A stretch of 64,000 bases of DNA, from the NCBI GenBank assembly GCA_964057225.1, contig CAXKVF010000094.1, forward strand, positions 74,453 to 138,452, written 5' to 3'. Both the position numbers and the translations under genes were made by a program. Each line of letters opens with the position of its first letter. Within the stretch, counting starts at the first letter, position 1. Under the pieces are notes generated by a model, which saw only the letters and a list, made by a program, of their open reading frames with translations, had not been told where the DNA came from and did no database searches. This DNA comes from Auanema rhodensis (taxonomy: Eukaryota > Animalia > Nematoda). Shown in pieces: positions 9,001 through 44,500 of this stretch.

Positions 9001-12000
9001 TTTTGAAAACCGCATCTCTTTATCTTTCACGTGAAGCGAGTTACATACCAAGTGCACATCACGTGTACATTTAATTAGCATAAATTAAAGTTCACGTAAA
9101 TTTCAAAGTCATGGTTACCATGAACCAATATCAATAAAAATTTGTTTTTAGACTAATATGGACATGGGGAATCTAATTTTGAAAACCGCATCTCTTTATC
9201 TTTCACGTGAAGCGAGTTACATACCAAGTGCACATCACGTGTACATTTAATTAGCATAAATTAAAGTTCACTTAAATTTCAAAGTCATGGTTACCATGAA
9301 CCAATATCAATAAAAATTTGTTTTTAGACTAATATGGACATGGGGAATCTAATTTTGGAAACCGCATCTCTTTATCTTTCACGTGAAGCGAGTTACATAC
9401 CAAGTGCACATCACGTGTACATTTAATTAGCATAAATTAAAGTTCACGTAAATTTCAAAGTCATGGTTACCATGCACCAATATCAATAAAAATTTGTTTT
9501 TAGACTAATATGGACATGGGGAATCTAATTTTGAAAACCGCATCTCTTTATCTTTCACGTGAAGCGAGTTACATACCAAGTGCACATCACGTGTACATTT
9601 AATTAGCATAAATTAAAGTTCACGTAAATTTCAAAGTCATGGTTACCATGCACCAATATCAATAAAAATTTGTTTTTAGACTAATATGGACATGGGGAAT
9701 CTAATTTTGAAAACCGCATCTCTTTATCTTTCACGTGAAGCGAGTTACATACCAAGTGCACATCACGTGTACATTTAATTAGCATAAATTAAAGTTCACG
9801 TAAATTTCAAAGTCATGGTTACCATGCACCAATATCAATAAAAATTTGTTTTTAGACTAATATGGACATGGGGAATCTAATTTTGAAAACCGCATCTCTT
9901 TATCTTTCACGTGAAGCGAGTTACATACCAAGTGCACATCACGTGTACATTTAATTAGCATAAATTAAAGTTCACGTAAATTTCAAAGTCATGGTTACCA
10001 TGAAGCAATATCAATAAAAATTTGTTTTTAGACTAATATGGACATGGGGAATCTAATTTTGAAAACCGCATCTCTTTATCTTTTACGTGAAGCGAGTTAC
10101 ATACCAAGTGCACATCACGTGTACATTTAATTAGCATAAATTAAAGTTCACGTAAATTTCAAAGTCATGGTTACCATGCACCAATATCAATAAAAATTTG
10201 TTTTTAGACTAATATGGACATGGGGAATCTAATTTTGAAAACCGCATCTCTTTATCTTTCACGTGAAGCGAGTTACATACCAAGTGCACATCACGTGTAC
10301 ATTTAATTAGCATAAATTAAAGTTCACGTAAATTTCAAAGTCATGGTTACCATGCACCAATATCAATAAAAATTTGTTTTTAGACTAATATGGACATGGG
10401 GAATCTAATTTTGAAAACCGCATCTCTTTATCTTTTACGTGAAGCGAGTTACATACCAAGTGCACATCACGTGTACATTTAATTAGCATAAATTAAAGTT
10501 CACGTAAATTTCAAAGTCATGGTTACCATGAACCAATATCAATAAAAATTTGTTTTTAGACTAATATGGACATGGGGAATCTAATTTTGAAAACCGCATC
10601 TCTTTATCTTTCACGTGAAGCGAGTTACATACCAAGTGCACATCACGTGTACATTTAATTAGCATAAATTAAAGTTCACGTAAATTTCAAAGTCATGGTT
10701 ACCATGCACCAATATCAATAAAAATTTGTTTTTAGACTAATATGGACATGGGGAATCTAATTTTGAAAACCGCATCTCTTTATCTTTTACGTGAAGCGAG
10801 TTACATACCAAGTGCACATCACGTGTACATTTAATTAGCATAAATTAAAGTTCACGTAAATTTCAAAGTCATGGTTACCATGAACCAATATCAATAAAAA
10901 TTTGTTTTTAGACTAATATGGACATGGGGAATCTAATTTTGAAAACCGCATCTCTTTATCTTTCACGTGAAGCGAGTTACATACCAAGTGCACATCACGT
11001 GTACATTTAATTAGCATAAATTAAAGTTCACGTAAATTTCAAAGTCATGGTTACCATGCACCAATATCAATAAAAATTTGTTTTTAGACTAATATGGACA
11101 TGGGGAATCTAATTTTGAAAACCGCATCTCTTTATCTTTTACGTGAAGCGAGTTACATACCAAGTGCACATCACGTGTACATTTAATTAGCATAAATTAA
11201 AGTTCACGTAAATTTCAAAGTCATGGTTACCATGAACCAATATCAATAAAAATTTGTTTTTAGACTAATATGGACATGGGGAATCTAATTTTGAAAACCG
11301 CATCTCTTTATCTTTCACGTGAAGCGAGTTACATACCAAGTGCACATCACGTGTACATTTAATTAGCATAAATTAAAGTTCACGTAAATTTCAAAGTCAT
11401 GGTTACCATGCACCAATATCAATAAAAATTTGTTTTTAGACTAATATGGACATGGGGAATCTAATTTTGAAAACCGCATCTCTTTATCTTTTACGTGAAG
11501 CGAGTTACATACCAAGTGCACATCACGTGTACATTTAATTAGCATAAATTAAAGTTCACGTAAATTTCAAAGTCATGGTTACCATGCACCAATATCAATA
11601 AAAATTTGTTTTTAGACTAATATGGACATGGGGAATCTAATTTTGAAAACCGCATCTCTTTATCTTTCACGTGAAGCGAGTTACATACCAAGTGCACATC
11701 ACGTGTACATTTAATTAGCATAAATTAAAGTTCACGTAAATTTCAAAGTCATGGTTACCATGAAGCAATATCAATAAAAATTTGTTTTTAGACTAATATG
11801 GACATGTGGAATCTAATTTTGAAAACCGCATCTCTTCATCTTTCACGTGAAGCGAGTTACATACCAAGTGCACATCACGTGTACATTTAATTAGCATAAA
11901 TTAAAGTTCACGTAAAATTCAAAGTCATGGTTACCATGAACCAATATCAATAAAAATTTGTTTTTAGACTAATATGGACATGGGGAATCTAATTTTGAAA

Positions 12001-12255
12001 ACCGCATCTCTTTATCTTTCACGTGAAGCGAGTTACATACCAAGTGCACATCACGTGTACATTTAATTAGCATAAATTAAAGTTCACGTAAATTTCAAAG
12101 TCATGGTTACCATGAAGCAATATCAATAAAAATTTGTTTTTAGACTAATATGGACATGGGGAATCTAATTTTGAAAACCGCATCTCTTTATCTTTTACGT
12201 GAAGCGAGTTACATACCAAGTGCACATCACGTGTACATTTAATTAGCATAAATTA
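1..12255. repeat. 176-bp satellite array, block 1 (~70 monomers; continues beyond window start)
   Basis: CTAATATGGACATGGGGAATC recurs at 1, 177, 353 ... 881 (period 176); monomers differ by only a few substitutions. Confidence 0.99.
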
Positions 12256-12292
12256 GTCAAGGTTTATTGTTCTTTATCACAGGTTATAACAA
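12256..12292 (-). promoter_or_regulatory. 3'-terminal hairpin plus AATAAA of element A (candidate RT recognition signal)
   Basis: Sense sequence TTGTTATA-ACC-TGTGATAA-AGAACAATAAACCTTGAC; shares TTATAACCTGTGAT..GAACAATAAACC with the element B end. Confidence 0.65.
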
Positions 12293-12493
12293 TAGCAGTT
12301 TTGAAAAAAGAAAGTGGATAAAAGAAGTTCCTTACAATATGAACATGATTATATAAATTGATTGACATGAAAACATTAATTGTATAGAGATAAGAATAAT
12401 TATTGAATCAATTATGTCAGTAGAAAATATATATTCTAAACAAGTAAATCTATGTGTCATAGTTGTCAACCCATCCTTGATAAACAAGGGATT

Positions 12494-12644
12494 TGTTCAG
12501 TTCAAAAAATATGACCTGACCTCATTTTTACTTTTACCAGGTGCGGTGGAACTTAGAGAAAAAGTCGAGCCCGTTCTGGTAATCAGAGGTAACTATCACC
12601 AGATTCGTATGGCTAATGCCTATAGAGTCCATGGTGCAGTAACA
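12494..12644 (-). ncRNA. Conserved structured cis-RNA (four-way junction) in element A 3' UTR
   Basis: Conserved blocks and compensatory base pairs relative to 41140-41283. Confidence 0.7.
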
Positions 12645-12796
12645 TTGTAGCAAAGGGAACAAGGATGTGGTTGAAAACAAAAAATGATACATGAAGAACA
12701 TAGTTTGCATAGATATTTGTAGAAGACATATTGAAATAATAATTAGAGAACAAAATATCATAAGCAGACGAAAAACATTAATAATGAAAGTGCAAG

Positions 12797-15625
12797 CTAA
12801 TCGCTAAGGAAAAGTTGAAGATGTTTGCGAAATTTGGGAGCTTTTTCAAGACTCACAATGTTTGATGGTATTGAATTCCAGAGTTCTATGGCTCTGTACT
12901 CGATACCTCTTCTAGTTTGAGTCTTCTGGACGTTTGGAAAATCCACAGTCCATTCGTGACGCCTTAGTGAGTGTGTGAATTTTTTGAGCTTAAAAATTTT
13001 CAAAGTATTCTCTGAAATTGGTTGTTTTATTTGGTTAAAATAAAAAATTAAATCGAAAACTAGTCTTCTGAAAAATAACTTTTGCCCCCCTAGCAAAGAC
13101 AGTTGATCTTCATAGCTCATTTTAGATCCTGAGCGCATGAAAACTGCGCGCAGAAACTTTTTTTGAACATTTTCAATCCGGTCTTTGTCTTTAGAATCTT
13201 GTGGGGACCAGATAATAGAAGCATATTCCAATATTGGTCTTATGTAAGTACAGAATAAGTTGTACATAAGAGAAGGCGATTTAGAGTAGAAACAACGTAA
13301 AATTATTTTACATTTTTTTGCTGCTTCACTTGTGATTTTGTTTATGTGGTTTGAGAAGGAGAGATTGTAATCTGTGAATACTCCAAGATCTTTGTAACAA
13401 TCTACTGAAGATAGGTTAAAGTTACCAAAAGTGAAAGCGAAGTTTTCAGGATTACTAATTGGTTTATTTGACATAACCATTATTTTAGATTTAGAGATGT
13501 TAACGGCCATCCCGTTTGAGTCGCACCATAATTTTAATTGATCAAGGGCCCGCTGTAAACTAGTAGGGTTTTTGCTGTAGAGCTTCAAATCATCTGCATA
13601 GAGAATGGAGCTGACATCATTAGGAAAATCGGATGTTATGTCATTTATGTAAAATAAAAACAACAGAGGACCAAGAACTGTACCTTGTGGTACACCACAA
13701 GTGAGTTGTTTAGGTGGTGATAAGGAATTATTGACCATAACTGAAAAAAACCTACCAGAGATGAAACTTTGGAGAAAGGAATGAAGTGGGCCTTGAATAC
13801 CAATGGACTTGAGTTTTGAAAAAAGAGTAGAATGTTGTATAAGATCGAAGGCTTTTGAAAAGTCGATATAAGCTACAAAAACCGGAGTATTACAGTCCAA
13901 TGATGATCTGAAAGAGATGTGGCTACTGAGAATTGCAGAAACAGTGCTTCTTTTAGGAAGGAAGGCGTGTTGATTTTGAGATATGGCACCATTGGAAATA
14001 CCAAAATTAAGAAGTGGAGTACGTATTATACGTTCAAAGATTTTTGAGAGACTGGAAGTGAGTGAAATTGGGCGGTAGTTACTTGGATTTTCAGGTCGGC
14101 CCGTTTTGAAAATGGGACGAATCCAGGCTAACTTCCAATCAGGAGGACAAGTTGAGGTAACTAACAAATTGTGAAAAATAAAAGCTAATGGATTAGCCAG
14201 AGTAAAAGCACATTGTTTAAGAAAGTAATATGGAATACCATCCGGAGATGTGGATACCCTGAGTGGAAGACTATGAAGAGTTTTGTAGACCAATTCAGGT
14301 GTTATATCCATGAAATCAATGGTATGACTGGAAGAAGAAGAGACGGAAACATGAGTGTTTTCCTGAGAGACAAGAGGAGAAAGAGGAGAAACCGTGAAAA
14401 CCTCGGCAAATGCTGACACTTTATCAATATCTGAAGAAACTGACACATTGTTGACAGTGAGGTTTGGAATGTCAGATGTTTTACCATTTAATCGGGCCTT
14501 ACAAAAACGATAAAAAAGTTTGGAGTTTTTTAAGGCAGCAATACGCTCTTCCTCTAAAGCACAATTGATTTTTATTAGCTTGTCCAATTTTACTGAAAGA
14601 TTTTTACGGCGAATCTCGTCAGATAGATATAAAGAGCAACTTAGCCTGTTAATTTGATTTCTGAGTTTTGCAATGTTACGATCCGCTTTTTTATTTTTCC
14701 TCGGTTGTTTTTTAGGAACATAAATGTCAATGATTGAATGTAGAATAGAGATAAACTTTGAATACGATTGGAGTGGAGTAAGACCTGAAAGTTCAGAACA
14801 GAAGTCGATGTTGACCAGTTGCCTATTGATACGTTCATAATCAGCCAAAAGGAAATTGCGGTCTGATAACATGGAGAGAGATGTGGGTTCAGCACTATGT
14901 AAATCTTGTAGATGAAAATTTTCAGATTTTGAAAGTATATGAAAGGTGATGGAAAAATGATCCGAAGCCCCAAGTGGACCAGATCGCTTGATATTGTTGA
15001 CACAACGAACGTTATTTGTAATTATATAGTCAAGAATATTTTCACCTCTAGTAGGAAAATTTACTAGCTGGTTTAGACAATTGTGATTGAGAAATTGGAG
15101 TAGAATTCTACTAGAAGGAGTAGGTTGAGAACATATACCAAGATCCCAGTTTATTTTAGGGAAATTAAGATCACCAGTGAGATAGAGAGACCGATTAACT
15201 AAATGATTTTGTAGATCACAAAGATAGTTTGAGAAATCTAAGCTAGATGATGATGGAGAACGGTAACAAACAGAAAAAATAGAATTGGAAGATGTGATGA
15301 GAATATTTATAAACTGTATGGTAGATGAATTACAAGAGCAGGAAAGAAGACGAAAAGTAATATGTTTTTTGATGAAAAGTAGTACACCACCACCCCGTGA
15401 TGAACATCTATCAGCCCTGAGGATATTATAGATGTCACCTAACGGAAGAAGATTAGTGTTAAATTGGGGGTAAAGCCAGGACTCTGATATAGCAATTATA
15501 TCAGGAGAATTGGGAGAGATGATAACTGGGAGAAGATGAAGTTTGGTGAGAATTGAGCGTGCATTGTAACAGTGAACAGAAATGTAAGTGTGGTTAGAGA
15601 CGAGAACAGGTGTTGACGATAACAT
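12797..15625 (-). CDS. Element A ORF2: AP endonuclease + reverse transcriptase (942 aa from ATG at 15625; frame is open further upstream, overlapping the ORF1 end)
   Basis: EN motifs NARS, ISESW, RGGGV, CYR, GDLN, LDY, SDH; RT motifs NYRPISLTS, DFSKAFD, GVPQGTVLGPLLF, YADD, KDLGV; no internal stops. Confidence 0.97.
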   Translation of the reverse strand: MLSSTPVLVSNHTYISVHCYNARSILTKLHLLPVIISPNSPDIIAISESWLYPQFNTNLLPLGDIYNILRADRCSSRGGGVLLFIKKHITFRLLSCSCNSSTIQFINILITSSNSIFSVCYRSPSSSSLDFSNYLCDLQNHLVNRSLYLTGDLNFPKINWDLGICSQPTPSSRILLQFLNHNCLNQLVNFPTRGENILDYIITNNVRCVNNIKRSGPLGASDHFSITFHILSKSENFHLQDLHSAEPTSLSMLSDRNFLLADYERINRQLVNIDFCSELSGLTPLQSYSKFISILHSIIDIYVPKKQPRKNKKADRNIAKLRNQINRLSCSLYLSDEIRRKNLSVKLDKLIKINCALEEERIAALKNSKLFYRFCKARLNGKTSDIPNLTVNNVSVSSDIDKVSAFAEVFTVSPLSPLVSQENTHVSVSSSSSHTIDFMDITPELVYKTLHSLPLRVSTSPDGIPYYFLKQCAFTLANPLAFIFHNLLVTSTCPPDWKLAWIRPIFKTGRPENPSNYRPISLTSSLSKIFERIIRTPLLNFGISNGAISQNQHAFLPKRSTVSAILSSHISFRSSLDCNTPVFVAYIDFSKAFDLIQHSTLFSKLKSIGIQGPLHSFLQSFISGRFFSVMVNNSLSPPKQLTCGVPQGTVLGPLLFLFYINDITSDFPNDVSSILYADDLKLYSKNPTSLQRALDQLKLWCDSNGMAVNISKSKIMVMSNKPISNPENFAFTFGNFNLSSVDCYKDLGVFTDYNLSFSNHINKITSEAAKKCKIILRCFYSKSPSLMYNLFCTYIRPILEYASIIWSPQDSKDKDRIENVQKKFLRAVFMRSGSKMSYEDQLSLLGGQKLFFRRLVFDLIFYFNQIKQPISENTLKIFKLKKFTHSLRRHEWTVDFPNVQKTQTRRGIEYRAIELWNSIPSNIVSLEKAPKFRKHLQLFLSD

Positions 15626-15629
15626 TGGA

Positions 15630-15641
15630 TCAACGAAAGGA
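15630..15641 (-). other. Putative +1 ribosomal frameshift site TCC TTT CGT TGA (element A)
   Basis: Identical to the UCC_UUU_CGU PA-X motif; last three codons of ORF1; ORF2 lies in the +1 frame (CCT TTC GTT GAT); conserved in element B. Confidence 0.7.
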
Positions 15642-16699
15642 CCCGTTATTGGACAAAACAACAGAAGATGATGCAGAAGGACTACTCATAGATCTGGTAT
15701 TAGGTCCAGTTGGTTTAACTACCCGAGGCGGATTTTTTCTCCTTCTTGGGCTTATTGAATGATTTTTATCTGTTGGTACAGACACCTGCCTATTGTTAGA
15801 CCGACTGGGTCTACCAGATTTACGAGGGGGGCTGGAGATGAGAGAAGAAATTGGTTTTAAGATTGAACTGCAAACGGCATCAACTACTGAAGGGGTTTCA
15901 GCTGGTTGAGTGTCCACAGTGACAGAGAGAGTGTTGATGGCATGCGAAGTAACATTGGTAGATTTACGGGGGACTTCAATAATTTTGAGATCCCGTACAA
16001 GAAAAGTCTTTTCAGTGTTATTTTCATTCTTGATTTTTGCTTCTTTTCGCAAGTTTTTCTCCAGTTCAATTTCGAAGGGGAGATAATCTCGTCGCAAAAA
16101 CGTTTTTGAGAGGAAATCGAAGCATTTTGATTTATTGAATTTAATAACTTGAATAATCTTGTCACGTAAATCTACCGATGGACACGTAATTATGAGAGGG
16201 CCAGGGGAATTAGATTTGAGAGTTGAACGTGCAATAGTAATTTGATTGCTATCGATCAAAGAAGACAAAGTGGTGTCCTGAGATTTCTCGATAATAAGAT
16301 AATAAGTTTTAGTAACAACAGAGGTTCAGTTGGAAATTCTGTTGACTTTAATGGCACTCGAAACCAAAGGGCTCTTTTGGCACGGTAGAGGTACTTTGTC
16401 TCCTCTGATCGTAATTTTTGAAAATGACATGCTACATTGAGTGGGGAAAAAGTTGGAACACAGGTAGAATTAGTGTTGCTAGTGGTTTGAAATGAGTTAA
16501 AAGTTTGCTCTAACTTATCTAAGCGGGATTTGAAATCCGTTTCGATAGTTTTTAAGCGAGCCTCGTGCGACGTGATACTAATTTTCATACAGTTAAGCTC
16601 ATTTTTTATATCATTTGACAATTTTGAAAAAGAGTTCTCGAGAGACTTTGAGAAATTTTGAAGAGCATTTGTAAGAAAATCATTAGTCACGAAAGACAT
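15630..16699 (-). pseudogene. Element A ORF1 (coiled-coil N-terminus, conserved core, basic Ser/Pro-rich tail), split by one frameshift
   Basis: ATG at 16699 (MSFVTND...). Track ORFs 16256..16753 and 15630..16268 overlap and can be joined by one -1 frame change between ~16324 and 16256. The C-terminal part aligns with element B ORF1 (YLPFEI.LE.NLR.EAK, FLVRDL, SPRRRKNPPR, SFR*). Confidence 0.8.
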
Positions 16700-16899
16700 A
16701 TTGAAAAACGAGGGAGTAAAAGAAGGGAAGTAAGAAAGAATAAGAATAAACACTGAAGTGGAAAATAAAAAAGAAACAAATACGAGAGAAAGGAAATAAT
16801 GATAAAACTAAAATGCGATACGAAAGAGAGCGCACCTTGACAAAGCCAGTCCGACGAAAATTTCCTTGACAGAAACGGATCCGGATCCAAACAGCGGAA

Positions 16900-17519
16900 G
16901 TCAACTGACGAGTGGGAGGTCAACTGACGAGTGTGGAGGTCAACTGACGAGTGAGGAGGTCAACTGACGAGTGGGAGGTCAACTGACGAGTGTGGAGGTC
17001 AACTGACGAGTGGGAGGTCAACTGACGAGTGGGGAGGTCAACTGACGAGTGGGAGGTCAACTGACGAGTGAGGAGGTCAACTGACGAGTGGGAGGTCAAC
17101 TGACGAGTGAGGAGGTCAACTGACGAGTGAGAGGTCAACTGACGAGTGGGGAGGTCAACTGACGAGTGGGGAGGTCAACTGACGAGTGGGAGGTCAACTG
17201 ACGAGTGGGAGGTCAACTGACGAGTGAGGAGGTCAACTGACGAGTGGGAGGTCAACTGACGAGTGGGAGGTCAACTGACGAGTGTGGAGGTCAACTGACG
17301 AGTGGGAGGTCAACTGACGAGTGGGAGGTCAACTGACGAGTGGGAGGTCAACTGACGAGTGGGAGGTCAACTGACGACTGGGAGGTCAACTGACGAGTGA
17401 GGACGTCAACTGACGAGTGAGGAGGTCAACTGACGAGTGAGGAGGTCAACTGACGAGTGAGGAGGTCAACTGACGAGTGAGGAGGTCAACTGACGAGTGA
17501 GGAGGTCAACTGACGAGTG
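16900..17519. repeat. 32-copy 19-20-bp tandem array at the 5' end of element A
   Basis: Core GTCAACTGACGAGTG followed by a variable linker (GGAG, TGGAG, AGGAG, GGGAG, AGAG, AGGAC); cores start at 16900, 16919, 16939 ... 17505. Confidence 0.97.
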
Positions 17520-17548
17520 TTCACGTAAATTTCAAAATTTTAAATTTC
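17520..17548. other. Target-derived filler DNA at the element A 5' junction
   Basis: (G)TTCACGTAAATTTCAAA-ATTT-TAAATTTC are pieces of the satellite immediately downstream. Confidence 0.85.
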
Positions 17549-20500
17549 AAATTAAAGTTCACGTAAATTTCAAAGTCATGGTTACCATGAAGCAATATCA
17601 ATAAAAATTTGTTTTTAGACTAATATGGACATGGGGAATCTAATTTTGAAAACCGCATCTCTTTATCTTTTACGTGAAGCGAGTTACATACCAAGTGCAC
17701 ATCACGTGTACATTTAATTAGCATAAATTAAAGTTCACGTAAATTTCAAAGTCATGGTTACCATGAACCAATATCAATAAAAATTTGTTTTTAGACTAAT
17801 ATGGACATGGGGAATCTAATTTTGAAAACCGCATCTCTTTATCTTTCACGTGAAGCGAGTTACATACCAAGTGCACATCACGTGTACATTTAATTAGCAT
17901 AAATTAAAGTTCACGTAAATTTCAAAGTCATGGTTACCATGAAGCAATATCAATAAAAATTTGTTTTTAGACTAATATGGACATGTGGAATCTAATTTTG
18001 AAAACCGCATCTCTTTATCTTTCACGTGAAGCGAGTTACATACCAAGTGCACATCACGTGTACATTTAATTAGCATAAATTAAAGTTCACGTAAAATTCA
18101 AAGTCATGGTTACCATGAACCAATATCAATAAAAATTTGTTTTTAGACTAATATGGACATGGGGAATCTAATTTTGAAAACCGCATCTCTTTATCTTTCA
18201 CGTGAAGCGAGTTACATACCAAGTGCACATCACGTGTACATTTAATTAGCATAAATTAAAGTTCACGTAAATTTCAAAGTCATGGTTACCATGAACCAAT
18301 ATCAACAAAAATTTGTTTTTAGACTAATATGGACATGGGGAATCTAATTTTGGAAACCGCATCTCTTTATCTTTCACGTGAAGCGAGTTACATACCAAGT
18401 GCACATCACGTGTACATTTAATTAGCATAAATTAAAGTTCACGTAAATTTCAAAGTCATGGTTACCATGCACCAATATCAATAAAAATTTGTTTTTAGAC
18501 TAATATGGACATGGGGAATCTAATTTTGAAAACCGCATCTCTTTATCTTTTACGTGAAGCGAGTTACATACCAAGTGCACATCACGTGTACATTTAATTA
18601 GCATAAATTAAAGTTCACGTAAATTTCAAAGTCATGGTTACCATGAAGCAATATCAATAAAAATTTGTTTTTAGACTAATATGGACATGGGGAATCTAAT
18701 TTTGAAAACCGCATCTCTTTATCTTTCACGTGAAGCGAGTTACATACCAAGTGCACATCACGTGTACATTTAATTAGCATAAATTAAAGTTCACGTAAAT
18801 TTCAAAGTCATGGTTACCATGAACCAATATCAATAAAAATTTGTTTTTAGACTAATATGGACATGGGGAATCTAATTTTGAAAACCGCATCTCTTTATCT
18901 TTCACGTGAAGCGAGTTACATACCAAGTGCACATCACGTGTACATTTAATTAGCATAAATTAAAGTTCACGTAAATTTCAAAGTCATGGTTACCATGCAC
19001 CAATATCAATAAAAATTTGTTTTTAGACTAATATGGACATGGGGAATCTAATTTTGAAAACCGCATCTCTTTATCTTTCACGTGAAGCGAGTTACATACC
19101 AAGTGCACATCACGTGTACATTTAATTAGCATAAATTAAAGTTCACGTAAATTTCAAAGTCATGGTTACCATGCACCAATATCAATAAAAATTTGTTTTT
19201 AGACTAATATGGACATGGGGAATCTAATTTTGAAAACCGCATCTCTTTATCTTTCACGTGAAGCGAGTTACATACCAAGTGCACATCACGTGTACATTTA
19301 ATTAGCATAAATTAAAGTTCACGTAAATTTCAAAGTCATGGTTACCATGCACCAATATCAATAAAAATTTGTTTTTAGACTAATATGGACATGGGGAATC
19401 TAATTTTGAAAACCGCATCTCTTTATCTTTCACGTGAAGCGAGTTACATACCAAGTGCACATCACGTGTACATTTAATTAGCATAAATTAAAGTTCACGT
19501 AAATTTCAAAGTCATGGTTACCATGAAGCAATATCAATAAAAATTTGTTTTTAGACTAATATGGACATGGGGAATCTAATTTTGAAAACCGCATCTCTTT
19601 ATCTTTCACGTGAAGCGAGTTACATACCAAGTGCACATCACGTGTACATTTAATTAGCATAAATTAAAGTTCACGTAAATTTCAAAGTCATGGTTACCAT
19701 GCACCAATATCAATAAAAATTTGTTTTTAGACTAATATGGACATGGGGAATCTAATTTTGAAAACCGCATCTCTTTATCTTTCACGTGAAGCGAGTTACA
19801 TACCAAGTGCACATCACGTGTACATTTAATTAGCATAAATTAAAGTTCACGTAAATTTCAAAGTCATGGTTACCATGCACCAATATCAATAAAAATTTGT
19901 TTTTAGACTAATATGGACATGGGGAATCTAATTTTGAAAACCGCATCTCTTTATCTTTCACGTGAAGCGAGTTACATACCAAGTGCACATCACGTGTACA
20001 TTTAATTAGCATAAATTAAAGTTCACGTAAATTTCAAAGTCATGGTTACCATGAAGCAATATCAATAAAAATTTGTTTTTAGACTAATATGGAAATGGGG
20101 AATCTAATTTTGAAAACCGCATCTCTTTATCTTTCACGTGAAGCGAGTTACATACCAAGTGCACATCACGTGTACATTTAATTAGCATAAATTAAAGTTC
20201 ACGTAAATTTCAAAGTCATGGTTACCATGAACCAATATCAATAAAAATTTGTTTTTAGACTAATATGGACATGGGGAATCTAATTTTGAAAACCGCATCT
20301 CTTTATCTTTCACGTGAAGCGAGTTACATACCAAGTGCACATCACGTGTACATTTAATTAGCATAAATTAAAGTTCACGTAAATTTCAAAGTCATGGTTA
20401 CCATGAAGCAATATCAATAAAAATTTGTTTTTAGACTAATATGGACATGTGGAATCTAATTTTGAAAACCGCATCTCTTTATCTTTCACGTGAAGCGAGT

Positions 20501-35500: not shown

Positions 35501-37585
35501 TCACGTAAATTTCAAAGTCATGGTTACCATGCACCAATATCAATAAAAATTTGTTTTTAGACTAATATGGACATGGGGAATCTAATTTTGAAAACCGCAT
35601 CTCTTTATCTTTCACGTGAAGCGAGTTACATACCAAGTGCACATCACGTGTACATTTAATTAGCATAAATTAAAGTTCACGTAAATTTCAAAGTCATGGT
35701 TACCATGAACCAATATCAATAAAAATTTGTTTTTAGACTAATATGGACATGGGGAATCTAATTTTAAAAACCGCATCTCTTTATCTTTCACGTGAAGCGA
35801 GTTACATACCAAGTGCACATCACGTGTACATTTAATTAGCATAAATTAAAGTTCACGTAAATTTCAAAGTCATGGTTACCATGCACCAATATCAATAAAA
35901 ATTTGTTTTTAGACTAATATGGACATGGGGAATCTAATTTTGAAAACCGCATCTCTTTATCTTTCACGTGAAGCGAGTTACATACCAAGTGCACATCACG
36001 TGTACATTTAATTAGCATAAATTAAAGTTCACGTAAATTTCAAAGTCATGGTTACCATGCACCAATATCAATAAAAATTTGTTTTTAGACTAATATGGAC
36101 ATGGGGAATCTAATTTTGAAAACCGCATCTCTTTATCTTTCACGTGAAGCGAGTTACATACCAAGTGCACATCACGTGTACATTTAATTAGCATAAATTA
36201 AAGTTCACGTAAATTTCAAAGTCATGGTTACCATGAAGCAATATCAATAAAAATTTGTTTTTAGACTAATATGGAAATGGGGAATCTAATTTTGAAAACC
36301 GCATCTCTTTATCTTTCACGTGAAGCGAGTTACATACCAAGTGCACATCACGTGTACATTTAATTAGCATAAATTAAAGTTCACGTAAATTTCAAAGTCA
36401 TGGTTACCATGAAGCAATATCAATAAAAATTTGTTTTTAGACTAATATGGACATGGAAAATCTAATTTTGAAAACCGCATCTCTTTATCTTTCACGTGAA
36501 GCGAGTTACATACCAAGTGCACATCACGTGTACATTTAATTAGCATAAATTAAAGTTCACGTAAATTTCAAAGTCATGGTTACCATGAACCAATATCAAT
36601 AAAAATTTGTTTTTAGACTAATATGGACATGGGGAATCTAATTTTGAAAACCGCATCTCTTTATCTTTCACGTGAAGCGAGTTACATACCAAGTGCACAT
36701 CACGTGTACATTTAATTAGCATAAATTAAAGTTCACGTAAATTTCAAAGTCATGGTTACCATGCACCAATATCAATAAAAATTTGTTTTTAGACTAATAT
36801 GGACATGGGGAATCTAATTTTGAAAACCGCATCTCTTTATCTTTCACGTGAAGCGAGTTACATACCAAGTGCACATCACGTGTACATTTAATTAGCATAA
36901 ATTAAAGTTCACGTAAAATTCAAATTCATGGTTACCATGCACCAATATCAATAAAAATTTGTTTTTAGACTAATATGGACATGGGGAATCTAATTTTGAA
37001 AACCGCATCTCTTTATCTTTTACGTGAAGCGAGTTACATACCAAGTGCACATCACGTGTACATTTAATTAGCATAAATTAAAGTTCACGTAAATTTCAAA
37101 GTCATGGTTACCATGCACCAATATCAATAAAAATTTGTTTTTAGACTAATATGGACATGGGGAATCTAATTTTGAAAACCGCATCTCTTTATCTTTCACG
37201 TGAAGCGAGTTACATACCAAGTGCACATCACGTGTACATTTAATTAGCATAAATTAAAGTTCACGTAAATTTCAAAGTCATGGTTACCATGCACCAATAT
37301 CAATAAAAATTTGTTTTTAGACTAATATGGACATGGGGAATCTAATTTTGAAAACCGCATCTCTTTATCTTTCACGTGAAGCGAGTTACATACCAAGTGC
37401 ACATCACGTGTACATTTAATTAGCATAAATTAAAGTTCACGTAAATTTCAAAGTCATGGTTACCATGAAGCAATATCAATAAAAATTTGTTTTTAGACTA
37501 ATATGGAAATGGGGAATCTAATTTTGAAAACCGCATCTCTTTATCTTTCACGTGAAGCGGGTTACATACCAAGTGCACATCACGT
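17549..37585. repeat. 176-bp satellite array, block 2 (~114 monomers)
   Basis: Same monomer and orientation; resumes in phase after the TSD; two monomers carry a 5-bp deletion (~28255 and ~30186). Confidence 0.99.
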
Positions 37586-37590
37586 CACGA

Positions 37591-37760
37591 ATTATCTTCC
37601 TTTTGAAATTATCTTCCTTTTGAATTGATCTTCCTTTTGAAATTATCTTCCTTTTGAATTGATCTTCCTTTTGAAATTATCTTCCTTTTGAAATTATCTT
37701 CCTTTTGAAATTATCTTCCTTTTGAAATTATCTTCCTTTTGAAATTATCTTCCTTTTGAA
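37591..37760. repeat. 10-copy 17-bp tandem array ATTATCTTCCTTTTGAA at the 5' truncation point of element B
   Basis: Units start at 37591, 37608, 37625 ... 37744; units 3 and 5 begin TTGATC; the last unit runs directly into ORF1 (TAT CTT CCT TTT GAA ATT CAA = YLPFEIQ). Confidence 0.97.
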
Positions 37761-38204
37761 ATTCAACTGGAAAACAACCTTCGCGAGGAAGCAAAAGAAA
37801 AAAACAAAAACAACACTAAGTCTGTCTTTTTGGTACGAGATCTTCGACTTATTGAAGTTTCCCGCAATCCAGCCGATCCTCCAAACCCTCAAATAGCTCC
37901 CACTTCTTCTTGTAATCAAACTCCTAAAATACCATCTATTCACAACGTTCCATTACCAACACTCCATTCTCAAACTCTCACATCCCCAACTCTTTTTTCT
38001 AGCCCCCCTTGTAAATCTGGTAGAATGAGCCGGTCGAAGGAAAGACAGAACCGCACGTCAAAAGACAAGCGTTCTTCTGTTAGCCCAAGACGTCGCAAAA
38101 ATCCACCACGATCCGCAAAATTAACCACAGATCAAATTACCAGATCTGTTAGCATGAACAATACATCTCAACGTCTCACGTCTGACAAAATGTCCTTTCG
38201 TTAA
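37746..38204 (+). pseudogene. Element B ORF1, C-terminal remnant (5'-truncated)
   Basis: YLPFEIQLENNLREEAKEKNKNNTKSVFLVRDLRLIEV aligns with element A DYLPFEIELEKNLRKEAKIKNENNTEKTFLVRDLKIIEV; ends MSFR*. Confidence 0.9.
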
Positions 38205-41025
38205 CACTGTCACGTCTTCAACCCCCCCTGTCTCACATCCTACCAGCCTCTCAGTTCAGTGTCTTAATGCACGTTCTATTCTTAACAAACTTCATATACT
38301 ATCCCACGTTATTTCTTTATCCACTCCTGATATAATTGCAATATCAGAATCATGGCTTTTTCCTGAGTTCGATACCCACCTACTCCCATGTAAACATACT
38401 TACACTATTTTTAGAGCCGATAGGTGTCTCTCACGTGGTGGTGGTGTTGTCCTCTATATTAAAAGTCATATCAAACCTTTTCTTCTTTCCTGTTCTTCTC
38501 CTCAATCTTCTATACAATTCATTAACTTACTCATACCTTCACTTAATGCTGTTTTCTCACTTTGTTATCGTCCTCCAACAGCTTCTCATTCAGATTTCAT
38601 TTCGTTTCTTTCTGATCTACGTAAACAAATTTCCAAACGATCGTTCTTCCTAACGGGCGATCTTAATTTTCCTAAAATCAACTGGGACCTCGGTATTTGC
38701 TCTCAACCATGCTCCTCTAGTAGATCTATTCTTCAATTTCTTAACGATAGCTGTTCTCATCAGTTGGTAAAGTTCCCTACCAGAGGCAAGAACATTCTTG
38801 ATTATGTTATCACTGATAACATATCCAGTGTAGGCAACATATCCCGTTCTTCCCCCCTCGGCTCCTCGGATCACCATTCTGTGGTTTTCCAAATTGTTTC
38901 AGACTCTTTTCAGTTAGCTAATACAATCAGCTCTTCTAATACTTTGTCTCCGGTAGCATTACCTATGTTTTCTGATCGCAATTTTCAAGCTGCTGACTAC
39001 AATCTCATCAATCATAGACTAGCCAAAATTGATTTCGCTAATCATCTCTCCGGTCTCACTCCTTTAGATTCTTACTCTAAACTTGTTCACATTCTTCACT
39101 CGGTCATTGATAGCTGCGTTCCCAAAAAACAAGAAAGAAGAAAAAAGAAGATTGACCGAGATATTTTAAAACTCTCATCTCATATAAAAAAACTCAGTTG
39201 TTCTTATCATCATCATGATGAATCTCGTCGTAAAAAACTTTCACATTCTCTTGATAAACTTATCAAGAATAGATTGGCTTTGGAAGAGGAACGTATTGCC
39301 AACTATAATAATTCAAAACTTCTTTACCGCTTTTGCAGAACCCGTTTGGGTGGCAGCACTTCAGATATCCCAAATCTCAAAATAGATAATGATTCTGTTT
39401 CGTCTGATTCTGACAAAGCTTCTATCTTTGCTACTACCTTCTCTGTTCGCCCCCTTCCTATCTCTCTACCACATGCTCCTCATTCCTTTTCTTCTACTAT
39501 TATCGACTTTATTGATGTCTCCCCTCTCAACGTTCACAAAATTCTCTGTCAGTTACCTCTTCGGGTATCAACATCCCCAGACGGAATCCCTTATTTCTTC
39601 CTAAAAAATTGTGCTTCTACTCTCTCTCAGCCTCTGGCCTTTGTTTTCCACAATCTACTTGTTTCCTCCTCTTGCCCTCCTGACTGGAAAACAGCTTGGA
39701 TTCGTCCCGTTCATAAATCAGGACTTTCTTCTAACCCGGCTAATTATCGTCCTATTTCTCTCACATCCAGTCTATCTAAAGTTTTTGAACGTCTCCTTCG
39801 TTCACCTCTTCTTGACTTTGGTATTTCCTCCGGCTTTATTTCTCCTAATCAGTTTGCTTTTCTTCCAAAACGCAATACTGTATCAGCAATTCTTAGTAGT
39901 CATGTTCTCTGGAGATCTGCTGTAGACAAGAAAAAACCTGTTTATGTTGCCTTTATTGACTTTTCTAAGGTTTTTGATCTCATAAATCATTCCGTTCTGT
40001 TAGCTAAATTAAAATCAATTGGCATTGCCGGCTGTATTCTCACTTTTCTCAAAAACTTCATTACTAATAGATCTTTCTCTGTATTAGTTAATTACTCTCT
40101 ATCCGTCACAAATTCTTTGCCCTGTGGAGTTCCACAGGGGACAGTACTGGGTCCTCTTCTTTTTTTATTTTATATAAATGATATTACATCAAATTTACCT
40201 GATGATGTACATCCAACTCTTTATGCAGACGATCTTAAACTAAGCAGCACAAATCCGGTAAGTTTACAACTAGCTTTGAATATTCTCAAAAACTGGTGTC
40301 TATCTAACGGTATGAAAGTTAATACTTCCAAATCCAAAGTTATGATTATATCGAGTACCACTACACCAAGAACAAACACAATTTTCAAATTTGGAGACAT
40401 TTCTTTAGCTACAGTATCATCATATAAAGATCTAGGTGTGTGTACAGACTATAATCTCTCTTTTAACAGTCATATAGACAGAATTTCTAACATTGCTGCT
40501 CACAAATGTCGTGTTATTTTGCGTTGTTTTTACTCAAGATCACCAACTTTGATGTTCAAACTTTTTTGCTGCTATATCCGACCAATTTTAGAATATGCTT
40601 CAGTTGTATGGTCTCCTCAGAATAACAAAGATAAAGCGCGCATTGAGTCTGTCCAAAAAAAGTTTTTAAACGCTATTTTTAAGAGAGCCGAAATAGCTTT
40701 GGATTACAAGAACCAGCTATTGTTTCTTGGAGCCGAGGAGCTAACGTTTAGAAGACTACTAATTGATCTCGTTTTTTATCATAATCAGATTACTAAAAAT
40801 GTTCCAGAAAACAACCTTAACTTTTTTACTACCAAGCACTATGCTCATTCACTACGTAGACATCTATGGAATGTTGAATACCCTGATCTTTGGAAGAGCG
40901 AAACAAGAACTGGAATAGAATACAGAGCTATTCAAATCTGGAACACACTCCCTGAAAACATCGTTCAACTAAGAAACACTTCCAGCTTCAGAAAACATCT
41001 TTCTATTAATCTTAACAATATTTAA
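38158..41025 (+). CDS. Element B ORF2: AP endonuclease + reverse transcriptase, stop-to-stop open frame with no initiator ATG
   Basis: Manual translation extends track ORF 38764..41025 upstream without stops to TGA at 38155-38157, recovering CLNARSILNKL, ISESW, RGGGV and GDLNFP. RT motifs NYRPISLTS, GVPQGTVLGPLLF and YADD are intact (DFSKVFD instead of DFSKAFD). Confidence 0.95.
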   Translation, partial: TIHLNVSRLTKCPFVNTVTSSTPPVSHPTSLSVQCLNARSILNKLHILSHVISLSTPDIIAISESWLFPEFDTHLLPCKHTYTIFRADRCLSRGGGVVLYIKSHIKPFLLSCSSPQSSIQFINLLIPSLNAVFSLCYRPPTASHSDFISFLSDLRKQISKRSFFLTGDLNFPKINWDLGICSQPCSSSRSILQFLNDSCSHQLVKFPTRGKNILDYVITDNISSVGNISRSSPLGSSDHHSVVFQIVSDSFQLANTISSSNTLSPVALPMFSDRNFQAADYNLINHRLAKIDFANHLSGLTPLDSYSKLVHILHSVIDSCVPKKQERRKKKIDRDILKLSSHIKKLSCSYHHHDESRRKKLSHSLDKLIKNRLALEEERIANYNNSKLLYRFCRTRLGGSTSDIPNLKIDNDSVSSDSDKASIFATTFSVRPLPISLPHAPHSFSSTIIDFIDVSPLNVHKILCQLPLRVSTSPDGIPYFFLKNCASTLSQPLAFVFHNLLVSSSCPPDWKTAWIRPVHKSGLSSNPANYRPISLTSSLSKVFERLLRSPLLDFGISSGFISPNQFAFLPKRNTVSAILSSHVLWRSAVDKKKPVYVAFIDFSKVFDLINHSVLLAKLKSIGIAGCILTFLKNFITNRSFSVLVNYSLSVTNSLPCGVPQGTVLGPLLFLFYINDITSNLPDDVHPTLYADDLKLSSTNPVSLQLALNILKNWCLSNGMKVNTSKSKVMIISSTTTPRTNTIFKFGDISLATVSSYKDLGVCTDYNLSFNSHIDRISNIAAHKCRVILRCFYSRSPTLMFKLFCCYIRPILEYASVVWSPQNNKDKARIESVQKKFLNAIFKRAEIALDYKNQLLFLGAEELTFRRLLIDLVFYHNQITKNVPENNLNFFTTKHYAHSLRRHLWNVEYPDLWKSETRTGIEYRAIQIWNTLPENIVQLRNTSSFRKHLSINLNNI
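38193..38204 (+). other. Putative +1 ribosomal frameshift site TCC TTT CGT TAA (element B)
   Basis: Same motif and position as in element A; ORF2 is in the +1 frame and has no AUG before the endonuclease domain. Confidence 0.72.
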
Positions 41026-41139
41026 CCTTTCTCTGTTATTGTAACTTGAAATCTTGTTTATGTATATTCTTCTATTTACAAGCATTTAAGCCTCAAGCTA
41101 TGTTAAAGTTAGACAGTTCCCTAGTTTACCTCTGAGACC

Positions 41140-41283
41140 TGTTACTACGTATTTTATCCTATAGACATTAGTCATACGGATAGAACGATAGTTACCTCTT
41201 GCTGTCAGAACGGGCTTGACTCACATCAAGAGTTCCACCGTACCTGTCAGAATACTATAGAGGTCAGTGATCTACACTGAACA
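41140..41283 (+). ncRNA. Conserved structured cis-RNA (four-way junction) in element B 3' UTR
   Basis: Homologous to 12494-12644 (minus strand) with compensatory changes. Confidence 0.7.
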
Positions 41284-41481
41284 AATCAACTCTTCTTTAT
41301 CAAACTAGAACTGTTTCGAAACCTTAACAAACAAGTAGTGCTGCTCGCTATCATTGTAAAAGAAAATATGCTGAACCTGTTTCTTGTACATATATTTTTT
41401 TAGTCAATTATTACAAGTATGTTTGTATTGTAAGGTTCTTTTGAATATCTGCAATTTTCCCGATTTATTAACCTTGTTTTC

Positions 41482-41519
41482 CGATTATAACCTGTGATTC
41501 GAACAATAAACCCGTTCAA
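41482..41519 (+). promoter_or_regulatory. 3'-terminal hairpin plus AATAAA of element B
   Basis: GATTATA-ACC-TGTGATT-CGAACAATAAACCCGTTCAA; conserved with the element A end. Confidence 0.65.
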
Positions 41520-44500
41520 ACGTGTACATTTAATTAGCATAAATTAAAGTTCACGTAAATTTCAAAGTCATGGTTACCATGAACCAATATCAATAAAAAT
41601 TTGTTTTTAGACTAATATGGACATGGGGAATCTAATTTTGAAAACCGCATCTCTTTATCTTTCACGTGAAGCGAGTTACATACCAAGTGCACATCACGTG
41701 TACATTTAATTAGCATAAATTAAAGTTCACGTAAAATTCAAAGTCATGGTTACCATGCACCAATATCAATAAAAATTTGTTTTTAGACTAATATGGACAT
41801 TGGGAATCTAATTTTGAAAACCGCATCTCTTTATCTTTTACGTGAAGCGAGTTACATACCAAGTGCACATCACGTGTACATTTAATTAGCATAAATTAAA
41901 GTTCACGTAAATTTCAAAGTCATGGTTACCATGCACCAATATCATTAAAAATTTGTTTTTAGACTAATATGGACATGGGGAATCTAATTTTGAAAACCGC
42001 ATCTCTTTATCTTTCACGTGAAGCGAGTTACATACCAAGTGCACATCACGTGTACATTTAATTAGCATAAATTAAAGTTCACGTAAATTTCAAAGTCATG
42101 GTTACCATGAACCAATATCAATAAAAATTTGTTTTTAGACTAATATGGACATGGGGAATCTAATTTTGAAAACCGCATCTCTTTATCTTTCACGTGAAGC
42201 GAGTTACATACCAAGTGCACATCACGTGTACATTTAATTAGCATAAATTAAAGTTCACGTAAATTTCAAAGTCGTGGTTACCATGCACCAATATCAATAA
42301 AAATTCGTTTTTAGACTAATATGGACATGGGGAATCTAATTTTGAAAACCGCATCTCTTTATCTTTCACGTGAAGCGAGTTACATACCAAGTGCACATCA
42401 CGTGTACATTTAATTAGCATAAATTAAAGTTCACGTAAATTTCAAAGTCATGGTTACCATGAACCAATATCAATTAAAATTTGTTTTTAGACTAATATGG
42501 ACATGGGGAATCTAATTTTGAAAACCGTATCTCTTTATCTTTCACGTGAAGCGAGTTACATACCAAGTGCACATCACGTGTACATTTAATTAGCATAAAT
42601 TAAAGTTCACGTAAATTTCAAAGTCATGGTTACCATGAACCAATATCAATAAAAATTTGTTTTTAGACTAATATGGACATGGGCAATCTAATTTTGAAAA
42701 CCGCATCTCTTTATCTTTCACGTGAAGCGAGTTACATACCAAGTGCACATCACGTGTACATTTAATTAGCATAAATTAAAGTTCACGTAAATTTCAAAGT
42801 CATGGTTACCATGCACCAATATCAATAAAAATTTGTTTTTAGACTAATATGGACATAGGGAATCTAATTTTGAAAACCGCATCTCTTCATCTTTCACGTG
42901 AAGCGAGTTACATACCAAGTGCACATCACGTCTAAATTTAATTAGCATAAATTAAAGTTCACGAAAATTTCAAAGTCATGGTTACCATGAACCAATATCA
43001 ATAAAAATTTGTTTTTAGACTAATATGGACATGGGCAATCTAATTTTGAAAACCGCATCTCTTTATCTTTCACGTGAAGCGAGTTACATACCAAGTGCAC
43101 ATCACGTGTACATTTAATTAGCATAAATTAAAGTTCACGTAAATTTCAAAGTCATGGTTACCATGCACCAATATCAATAAAAATTTGTTTTTAGACTAAT
43201 ATGGACATGGGGAATCTAATTTTGAAAACCGCATCTCTTCATCTTTCACGTGAAGCGAGTTACATACCAAGTGCACATCACGTGTACATTTAATTAGCAT
43301 AAATTAAAGTTCACGTAAATTTCAAAGTCATGGTTACCATGAACCAATATCAATAAAAATTTGTTTTTAGACTAATATGGACATGGGGAATCTCATTTTA
43401 AAAACCGCATCTCTTTATCTTTCACGTGAAGCGAGTTACATACCAAGTGCACATCACGTGTACATTTAATTAGCATAAATTAAAGTTCACGTAAATTTCA
43501 AAGTCATGGTTACCATGCACCAATATCAATAAAAATTTGTTTTTAGACTAATATGGACATGGGGAATCTAATTTTGAAAACCGCATCTCTTTATCTTTCA
43601 CGTGAAGCGAGTTACATACCAAGTGCACCTCACGTGTACATTTAATTAGCATAAATCAAAGTTCACGTAAATTTCAAAGTCATGGTTACCATGCACCAAT
43701 ATCAATAAAAATTTGTTTTTAGACTAATATGGACATGGGGAATCTAATTTTGAAAACCGCATCTCTTTATCTTTCACGTGAAGCGAGTTACATACCAAGT
43801 GCACATCACGTGTACATTTAATTAGCATAAATTAAAGTTCACGTAAATTTCAAAGTCATGGTTACCATGAACCAATATCAATAAAAATTTGTTTTTAGAC
43901 AAATATGGACATGGGGAATCTAATTTTGAAAACCGCATCTCTTTATCTTTCACGTGAAGCGAGTTACATACCAAGTGCACATCACGTGTACATTTAATTA
44001 GCATAAATTAAAGTTCACGTAAATTTCAAAGTCATGGTTACCATGCACCAATATCAATAAAAATTTGTTTTTAGACTAATATGGACATGGGGAATCTAAT
44101 TTTGAAAACCGCATCTCTTTATCTTTCACGTGAAGCGAGTTACATACCAAGTGCACATCACGTGTACATTTAATTAGCATAAATTAAAGTTCACGTAAAT
44201 TTCAAAGTCATGGTTACCATGCACCAATATCAATAAAAATTTGTTTTTAGACTAATATGGACATGGGGAATCTAATTTTGAAAACCGCATCTCTTCATCT
44301 TTCACGTGAAGCGAGTTACATACCAAGTGCACATCAAGTGTACATTTAATTAGCATAAATTAAAGTTCACGTAAATTTCAAAGTCATGGTTACCATGCAC
44401 CAATATCAATAAAAATTTGTTTTTAGACTAATATGGACATGGGGAATCTAATTTTGAAAACCGCATCTCTTTATCTTTCACGTGAAGCGAGTTACATACC

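Follow-up and report, generated by a model that had tools for sequence, protein, structure and literature searches.

Tandem arrays of terminal element sequence at the 5' junctions of a satellite-specific nematode LINE group suggest re-copying of the 5' end during insertion

How does a truncated LINE come to carry ten tandem copies of its own terminal 17 nt between its body and the target DNA? The question is raised by element B, one of two insertions in the window (the whole 64-kb stretch of DNA that was analysed), which according to TRF is a single 176-bp satellite array broken by elements A and B. A first-pass annotation had proposed that the reverse transcriptase of this family, or host end-joining, repeatedly re-copies the most 5' segment of the template at each insertion. 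The reading favoured here, with a probability of roughly 0.6, is that the array arose during the insertion of element B by re-copying of its terminal ~17 nt at the 5' junction, with the element's own reverse transcriptase (RT) as the likeliest polymerase.

Element A (12256–17548, minus strand) is a full-length satellite-specific non-LTR retrotransposon as judged by Pfam matches, open reading frames and ends. It consists of 3' UTR, ORF2, ORF1, 5' UTR, a native array and a junction filler, and is framed by the target site duplication (TSD) TAATTT, read directly from the sequence at 12250–12255 on its 3' side and again at 17549–17554 on its 5' side (both minus strand). ORF2 (12797–15661, minus strand) encodes 954 aa with an AP endonuclease and a reverse transcriptase, without RNase H. 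ORF1 (15630–16753, minus strand) lies in two frames, split by an 8-bp tandem duplication at 16290–16306 (CTTATTAT twice on the minus strand) that is missing in the relative L065. Pfam matches were RVT_1 (5e-34), Exo_endo_phos_2 (9e-8) and Exo_endo_phos (4e-5) for element A and RVT_1 (1e-32) for element B, while the Pfam scan of the ORF1 pieces of element A gave no match. The nearest solved reverse transcriptases are L1 ORF2p and R2 (both ~1e-12), and the closest database relatives share at most 35% identity. All copies have a common 3' end (...GAACAATAAACC(C)...), truncation points scattered along the element, short TSDs and no LTRs. A poly(A) tail is missing from the copies generally, and element A ends with ...GAACAATAAACCTTGAC. 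Elements A and B, with ~70% DNA identity to each other, belong to a non-LTR (LINE) group with an AP endonuclease followed by a reverse transcriptase. Within the 3' UTR, one block is kept between A (12530–12650) and B (41140–41283) while the neighbouring UTR has diverged; this block (...TAGCCATACG...GTTACCTCT...CAGAACGGGCT...GTTCCACCG.ACCTG...) is probably an RNA element read by the RT. The CR1/L2-like ('stringent') clade, marked by the lack of poly(A) and by an RT that recognises a 3' UTR stem, is a candidate placement for the group.

The satellite is the target of this group and occupies positions 1–12249 (TRF period 176, 98% matches) and, resumed, 41524–64000 (TRF) of the window. Almost all examined junctions of the group lie inside the 176-bp satellite; the exceptions are L038, L070 and L076. 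B-type lineages join at ...CACATCACGT| with the TSD ACGT, and the junction of element B recurs in L031, L033, L035, L039, L041, L046 and L047. A-type lineages join at ...GAACTTTAATTT| on the other strand, in the orientation opposite to the B-type and with the TSD TAATTT. The group is site-specific, as the same nucleotide position of the repeated target is reused at two fixed sites. No earlier report of a satellite-specific LINE of nematodes was found in a literature search. The arrangement resembles R1 and R2 in its fixed site within a tandem repeat, its short TSDs and its 5' truncation, but R1 and R2 target rDNA, whereas the target here is a non-coding 176-bp satellite with two sites used in opposite orientations by different lineages. 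R1 and R2 also show microhomologies, non-templated bases and, at full-length junctions, upstream target duplications of 16–27 nt (PMC2718515). The last of these are comparable to the 29-nt filler at the border of target and array in element A (17520–17548, minus strand, by direct reading), in which ~16 nt of upstream target (TTGAAATTTACGTGAA) occur a second time. A similar duplicated piece of target (GGTAACCATGACTTTGAAA) stands ahead of the arrays at C80:589651 and C84:487577, and all of these resemble the 'insertion site rearrangements' of Drosophila R1 (PMC2718515). Tandem reiteration of the element end is not described in that study.

Element B (37586–41519, plus strand) is a LINE truncated inside ORF1, as seen from direct reading and Pfam. 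Its TSD ACGT was read at 37582–37585 on the 5' side and again at 41520–41523 on the 3' side (both plus strand). The target ...CACATCACGT stops at 37585 and is followed by the junction filler CACGAATT (37586–37593, plus strand), which consists of a repeat of the target CACG (37586–37589) and a partial unit tail AATT (37590–37593). Nine added 17-nt units (ATCTTCCTTTTGAAATT) occupy 37594–37746 (plus strand; TRF and direct reading). They lead into the authentic unit at 37747–37763 (plus strand), which is the true 5' end of the truncated element according to its alignment with element A and with the copies L003–L012; it contains the YLPFE codons, and CAACTGG of ORF1 comes next. The body (37764–41519, plus strand) holds the rest of ORF1 (to 38204), ORF2 and the 3' UTR ending with ...AATAAACCCGTTCAA. 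In ORF2, the endonuclease part is broken and the RT reading frame spans 38764–41025. TRF describes the array as a 17-nt unit repeated 10.2 times with 94% matches (37590–37763), so that the tenfold repetition of the terminal 17 nt at the target, as first noticed, was borne out. The only variants are units 2 and 4 (37611–37627 and 37645–37661), which end with GAATTG in place of GAAATT, and they were rightly placed at the unit junctions.

The stretch that encodes YLPFE occurs once in ORF1 of element A (RDYLPFEIELE), as had been stated. In addition, ten longer copies of the B lineage (85–100% identical) read ...CGCGAC-TATCTTCCTTTTGAAATT-CAACTGG and have the 17 nt once each; the nine added units are missing from all of them. 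Because of this the array is private to element B, in agreement with the earlier view that it is not an inherited part of the element. An array of the 17-mer inside longer copies had been named as one of the observations that would speak against this view, and none was present in the ten relatives. A different claim did not survive the comparison with the parent copies. The 'ATT...ATT' microhomology that appeared to bound the unit is a product of the repetition itself. In the parent copies the base ahead of TATCTTCC is C (GAC|TATC), at most 1 nt is shared, and the ATT terminal redundancy suggested for a realignment in the manner of telomerase is absent. A truncation point lying 11 nt further upstream was considered as well, with ACGT as the microhomology and CACGAAT as an altered CGCGAC. 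It was dropped: ACGT was assigned to the target and not to element B because many copies use the target end ...CACGT|.

The element B junction is one of ~26 independent 5'-truncated junctions surveyed, for which the more distant lineages were only sampled. Besides element B, five clear independent truncated copies from several lineages and one imperfect one carry an array of their own terminal sequence at the target. L069 (C3:24025892) has a 19-nt unit nine times, taken from inside the RT domain (GPLLFLFY), and its body is ~99.8% identical to element A. The extra bases at its unit junctions are T seven times and then G, the G at the innermost junction being the sole variant. At C7:480767, only 34 nt of the 3' end are left behind nine 19–20-nt units of TATAACCTGTGATTCGAAC, with the junction extras T, none, C, G, G, T, T and T in order. 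L084 (C6:18510811) has a 17-nt unit four times, starting 57 nt into the 5' UTR, with TC at every unit junction; the unit is single-copy in L085. The remaining cases are L075 (21 nt twice, after an A10 run), L077 (28 nt three times, complex) and the imperfect, AT-rich L071. The longer relatives examined for these other private arrays likewise have the unit once. The inserted units are copied from the adjacent flank. In the clearest cases, element B and L069, the parent sequences have 0–1 nt of homology at the unit borders, and for the C7 copy it may be 4 nt (ATAA).

Reiteration of the 5' terminus is facultative, as about three quarters of the truncated copies are without a private array. The expectation that the terminal segment is re-copied at insertion was thus extended to five more clear copies and one imperfect copy, but not to each insertion, and an array of own sequence at the 5' junction was found in six to seven copies including element B, while ~19 of the ~26 truncated junctions were clean or had other end structures. 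Among the latter are an inverted 21-nt snap-back duplication in L034 (G000:C4:23316268-23317168) and a 5' inversion carrying a native array in L066 (G000:C3:10141400-10142700). A 1.2-kb internal direct duplication (positions 253–1474) together with a 14-nt unit repeated twice in ORF2 was seen in L065 (G000:C4:13079650-13081900). The three longest private arrays (37586–37763 of the window, 545–721 of L069 and C7:480767) have 9–10 units and a total of ~171–185 nt each. That these totals are near the satellite period of 176 bp may be a coincidence or may reflect a constraint imposed by chromatin or the enzyme.

It is highly improbable that such arrays are errors of assembly or stem from an internal VNTR inherited within an unseen subfamily. 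The former could be suspected for element B as no short-read contig spans its array: contigs from four runs of three studies covered some array-internal bins and left the bins 37612–37665 empty. Any array-internal 31-mer necessarily crosses a unit junction, though, and the k-mer contigs from all three studies cover array-internal positions. Moreover, the locus is found again on contig C95, where the array is unchanged and the 3 differences across 3737 bp all lie outside it; over the array, two contigs thus agree base for base, and the sixteen assembled copies of the C7 array agree as well. An inherited VNTR is at odds with the single unit in every longer relative. The stretch G000:C95:163348-189166 repeats the layout of A and B with 22,063 bp between the elements, compared to 25,502 bp in the window, at ~0.08% divergence; C95 represents either the second haplotype or a satellite block that underwent segmental duplication very recently.

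Private arrays are confined to one position of the elements. None was found within ~30 kb of element interiors (TRF score ≥50), and none was found at the 3' junctions. The sole interior array is an inherited, pyrimidine-rich 33–34-nt unit of the 5' UTR, repeated 2.7–3.6 times in the 86% subfamily (L043–L045, about 2820–2950; G000:C6:421900, C1:5110300 and C1:327300), which is not private to a copy. The interior rate is therefore at most ~1e-4 arrays per bp against six to seven arrays in ~1 kb of junction sequence (rough Poisson estimate <1e-6), and by this rough estimate the clustering of private arrays at the junction is far beyond chance.

This distribution bears on the possibility that replication slippage or unequal exchange within the satellite enlarged a short chance duplication at the element edge after insertion. 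Tandem arrays can expand in this way, the surrounding satellite has been amplified in blocks, and the a-b-a-b pattern of the variants in element B could be a 34-bp slippage step. Yet the six to seven independent arrays all sit precisely at a 5' junction, and L069 already has nine units despite a body ~99.8% identical to element A. In the C7 array, the extra bases differ from one junction to the next, which means that these junctions are not duplicates of an existing one. The same array has been duplicated with the satellite to at least 16 copies, and in 14 of 16 it still has the same nine units in the same order; likewise, the array of element B is identical in contigs C101 and C95 despite three nearby substitutions. 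Copied junctions, a position unrelated to the element ends and an unstable length, by which a minisatellite made by slippage would be recognised, were not observed. Slippage is accordingly regarded as very unlikely. As the arrays are kept in the duplicates and their successive junctions differ in extra bases, they were apparently made at insertion and have been stable since.

Full-length copies give a second view of the same end. All of those found begin with a native 18–23-nt unit, present from less than one or once up to 76 times, and such arrays head the full-length copies in at least four lineages. A presumed 5' end of L083 proved to be plain satellite. In element A, the array comprises 32 units of the 20-nt CACTCGTCAGTTGACCTCC (16896–17519, minus strand; TRF and direct reading) with 0–1 extra nt per junction, and its innermost unit forms the beginning of the unique 5' UTR. 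Across the copies of the A lineage, this unit occurs about 1, 6, 11, 19, 27 and 32 times. The unit of the B lineage, (CATT)CCGCGATTTGACCT, is present <1, 1, 2, 7, 8.6, 15 or 76 times depending on the copy, a third lineage has ~3 units of AGTTGACCTAGTTTCCTGGCC, and a further, fourth lineage has units of CACTACATTTTCGACTC.... A core, TTGAC(C)T (the TTGACCTC core), is common to the units of the A, B and third lineages, while the further lineage retains only TCGAC. The native unit is simply the first 18–23 nt of the element, since unique 5' UTR sequence follows on directly from the innermost unit. The array of element A, which had been noted as an independent array of an unrelated unit, is indeed present, but rather than an oddity of that copy it represents the group's native terminal repeat at the 5' end, with a core homologous between lineages.

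Variation in the native arrays is again confined to the unit junction, namely CCTCC[-/T/C/A]CACTC in the A lineage, [none/TC/AC] in L060 and GACC[1-5 nt]CCGCG in the B lineage. In several arrays (for example L044, L062 and L065), variants private to the copy are found on the outer (5') side and ancestral units beside the body. The clearest case is L065 with a three-step chain from ancestral inner to derived outer units, while in L047 an outer variant is loosely enriched and intermixed with ancestral units. Because the private variants are outer and the ancestral units adjoin the body, native arrays appear to grow at their 5' end, and those of up to 76 units were possibly built over several insertion cycles.

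From these end structures, we infer the following course for the favoured reading. During target-primed reverse transcription, the polymerase would run to the 5' terminus of an RNA template that had been shortened. The end of the nascent cDNA would not be joined immediately to the upstream satellite but would be set back by ~17 nt, and the terminal stretch would be copied again; in element B, this would have happened in nine rounds before the final joining. The same behaviour on full-length RNAs would yield the native arrays of 18–23-nt units. The 5' end of the RNA template is the probable stop, and all variation lies opposite the last template position. The restart, 17–21 nt back whatever the sequence and with 0–1 nt of homology in the clearest cases, suggests that a ruler in the enzyme–template complex and not microhomology would set the near-constant step. 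Microhomology as the cause of the step length had also been considered and was discarded as inconsistent across the arrays. Tiny copies re-inserted in tandem into the TSD, of the kind seen in R1 arrays, were rejected too, for the units are internal sequence without the 3' end of the element. Among the points against the favoured reading are runs of identical junction variants (a-b-a-b in element B, TTT and GG in the C7 array and TC throughout in L084), which hint that units already made may have served as template and are compatible with a process at the DNA level.

Such a process could be provided by a host end-joining polymerase, for example Pol theta, with cycles of annealing, limited synthesis, dissociation and re-annealing at the 5' junction. 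In nematode germ lines, mutagenic end joining runs mainly through Pol theta, and the templated insertions that it leaves usually consist of a single short stretch, or a few, bordered on each side by microhomology. The available text of PMC8654963 and PMC7368036 records templated insertions and tandem duplications that depend on Pol theta in C. elegans, with short flank copies at the repaired junction in direct or inverted orientation. The position of the arrays coincides with the junction left for host repair to seal, and the snap-back duplication of L034, the inversion of L066 and the target duplications (the filler of element A and CACG in element B) are typical of repair by templated insertion. 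The runs of identical junction variants would also suit a copying of DNA already made. On the other hand, 9–10 equal units with border homology of just 0–1 nt in element B and L069 differ from the known insertions. For the unit to stay constant, both the stop and the restart have to be fixed; in cDNA synthesis on RNA the template end supplies the stop, whereas it supplies none when the second strand is made on cDNA. The run of nine to ten equal cycles looks like a property of the element and not of generic repair, and so do the native arrays, which reach 76 units and keep their unit across lineages with ~30% divergence. A host polymerase as the maker of the arrays is hence judged unlikely.

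The favoured reading, with the element's RT as the polymerase, would be related to the serial template jumping and non-templated addition of R2-type enzymes. In vitro, such RTs append non-templated nucleotides where a template ends and move from one template to the next in series, as given in the available text of PMC8857657 and 10.1101/2021.04.30.442027 (= PMC8594491). The run-off at the 5' end, 0–2 extra nt at the joint and the onward synthesis described there fit the junction-limited variation observed here. The jumps of these accounts, though, lead in vitro to the 3' end of another molecule, while here the same stretch would be reused up to nine times per insertion, in vivo and with a fixed set-back. 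Known template jumps reach the 3' end of an acceptor and not an internal site of the same RNA, and we know of no established mechanism for a set-back of 19 nt. In another reading, the RT would jump serially onto separate short sense RNAs of ~17–23 nt, for example capped start-site RNAs or decay fragments. Nematodes possess capped small RNAs, and the unit sizes are within the range of small RNAs; abundant short start-site RNAs would account for the native arrays. The 3' end of an acceptor is, besides, the known mode of template jumping in the available text of PMC8857657. The truncated copies would nevertheless need many identical fragments whose 5' end falls at the template break, at positions as arbitrary as ORF1, the RT domain and the 3' UTR, and this makes the short-RNA route distinctly improbable.

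The first-pass annotation had likened the process to telomerase. Common to both would be an RT that copies a short template to its end, resets the product and copies it again, with a head-to-tail array at a DNA end as the result; here, head-to-tail arrays of 2–10 units of 17–28 nt were found in six to seven copies. A terminal redundancy that could realign the product was not found in element B and L069, where 0–1 nt are shared and an alignment region is thus lacking. Telomerase uses a dedicated internal template with terminal redundancy and steps of 5–8 nt, whereas the template here would be the arbitrary 5' end of the element mRNA, the step is 17–21 nt and the product is a junction within the chromosome and not a chromosome end. 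The bacterial defence RT DRT2 is another enzyme for comparison. Its unit is in the order of 100 nt. By rolling-circle reverse transcription, DRT2 builds a repetitive gene, the RT jumping from the end of the template region back to its start to give concatemeric cDNA, according to the available text of PMC11100668 and PMC12039810. A structured non-coding RNA joins the template ends in that account; none is evident here, and the truncated copies repeat arbitrary sequence.

Repeats at LINE ends are known in other forms. The 3'-end microsatellites of CR1-like elements and the (TAA)n of the I factor are short repeats attributed to slippage of the RT at the end of the LINE template. They differ from the arrays described here, as they are made at the 3' end at the start of synthesis and from 3–8-nt units of the element, while here the 5' end is concerned, at the finish, with 17–21-nt units of whatever is terminal. 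Variable tandem units in the 5' region are known from the monomers of mouse L1, from SLACS and from the 5' repeats of MoTeR. With these and with FoTeR, the LINEs of this study share a 5' region composed of a variable number of tandem units. The 5' repeats of FoTeR were attributed to slippage and recombination (PMC12857005). The units of all four, ~6–200 bp long, are treated as inherited promoter or VNTR modules, unlike the private arrays. In a literature search, no report was found of truncated LINE copies that make new arrays from their own 5' ends. The group is filed as a site-specific LINE group with putative insertion-coupled reiteration of the 5' terminus.

Completion of the 5' end is the least understood step of the LINE life cycle, and a natural record of it is preserved in these copies. 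As read here, it is the record of a polymerase that repeats the last 17–21 nt in equal steps at the template end with small errors only at the joints. If the polymerase is the RT of the element, this would be processive repeat addition by a retrotransposon enzyme in vivo, it would link LINE RTs with telomerase and DRT2, it would explain the origin and upkeep of the tandem 5' units of LINEs, and it would amount to a one-step mechanism for making minisatellites. A bolder version, which falls somewhat short of even odds, is that the ORF2 RT has a built-in repeat-addition processivity with a ruler of ~19 nt, can keep hold of the terminal stretch at any RNA 5' end for repeated copying, and in this way lets the elements regrow the 5' start-site or promoter arrays in each generation. 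An RT of this kind would parallel telomerase in countering the erosion of LINE 5' ends and would supply new minisatellites directly.

With its specialisation on a satellite, the group also illustrates clearly how LINEs can use such a repeat as a safe landing site, and its fragments are later amplified alongside the satellite. LINE remnants were found to be co-amplified with the satellite as higher-order repeat units in two regions. In G000:C7:480767-631000 (L049–L055), the unit consists of the 34-nt 3' end with its nine-unit array and is present in at least 16 copies. In G000:C4:13064303-13136570 (L037 and L057–L059), a 171-bp 3' end recurs with a spacing of 527 bp in at least eight copies.
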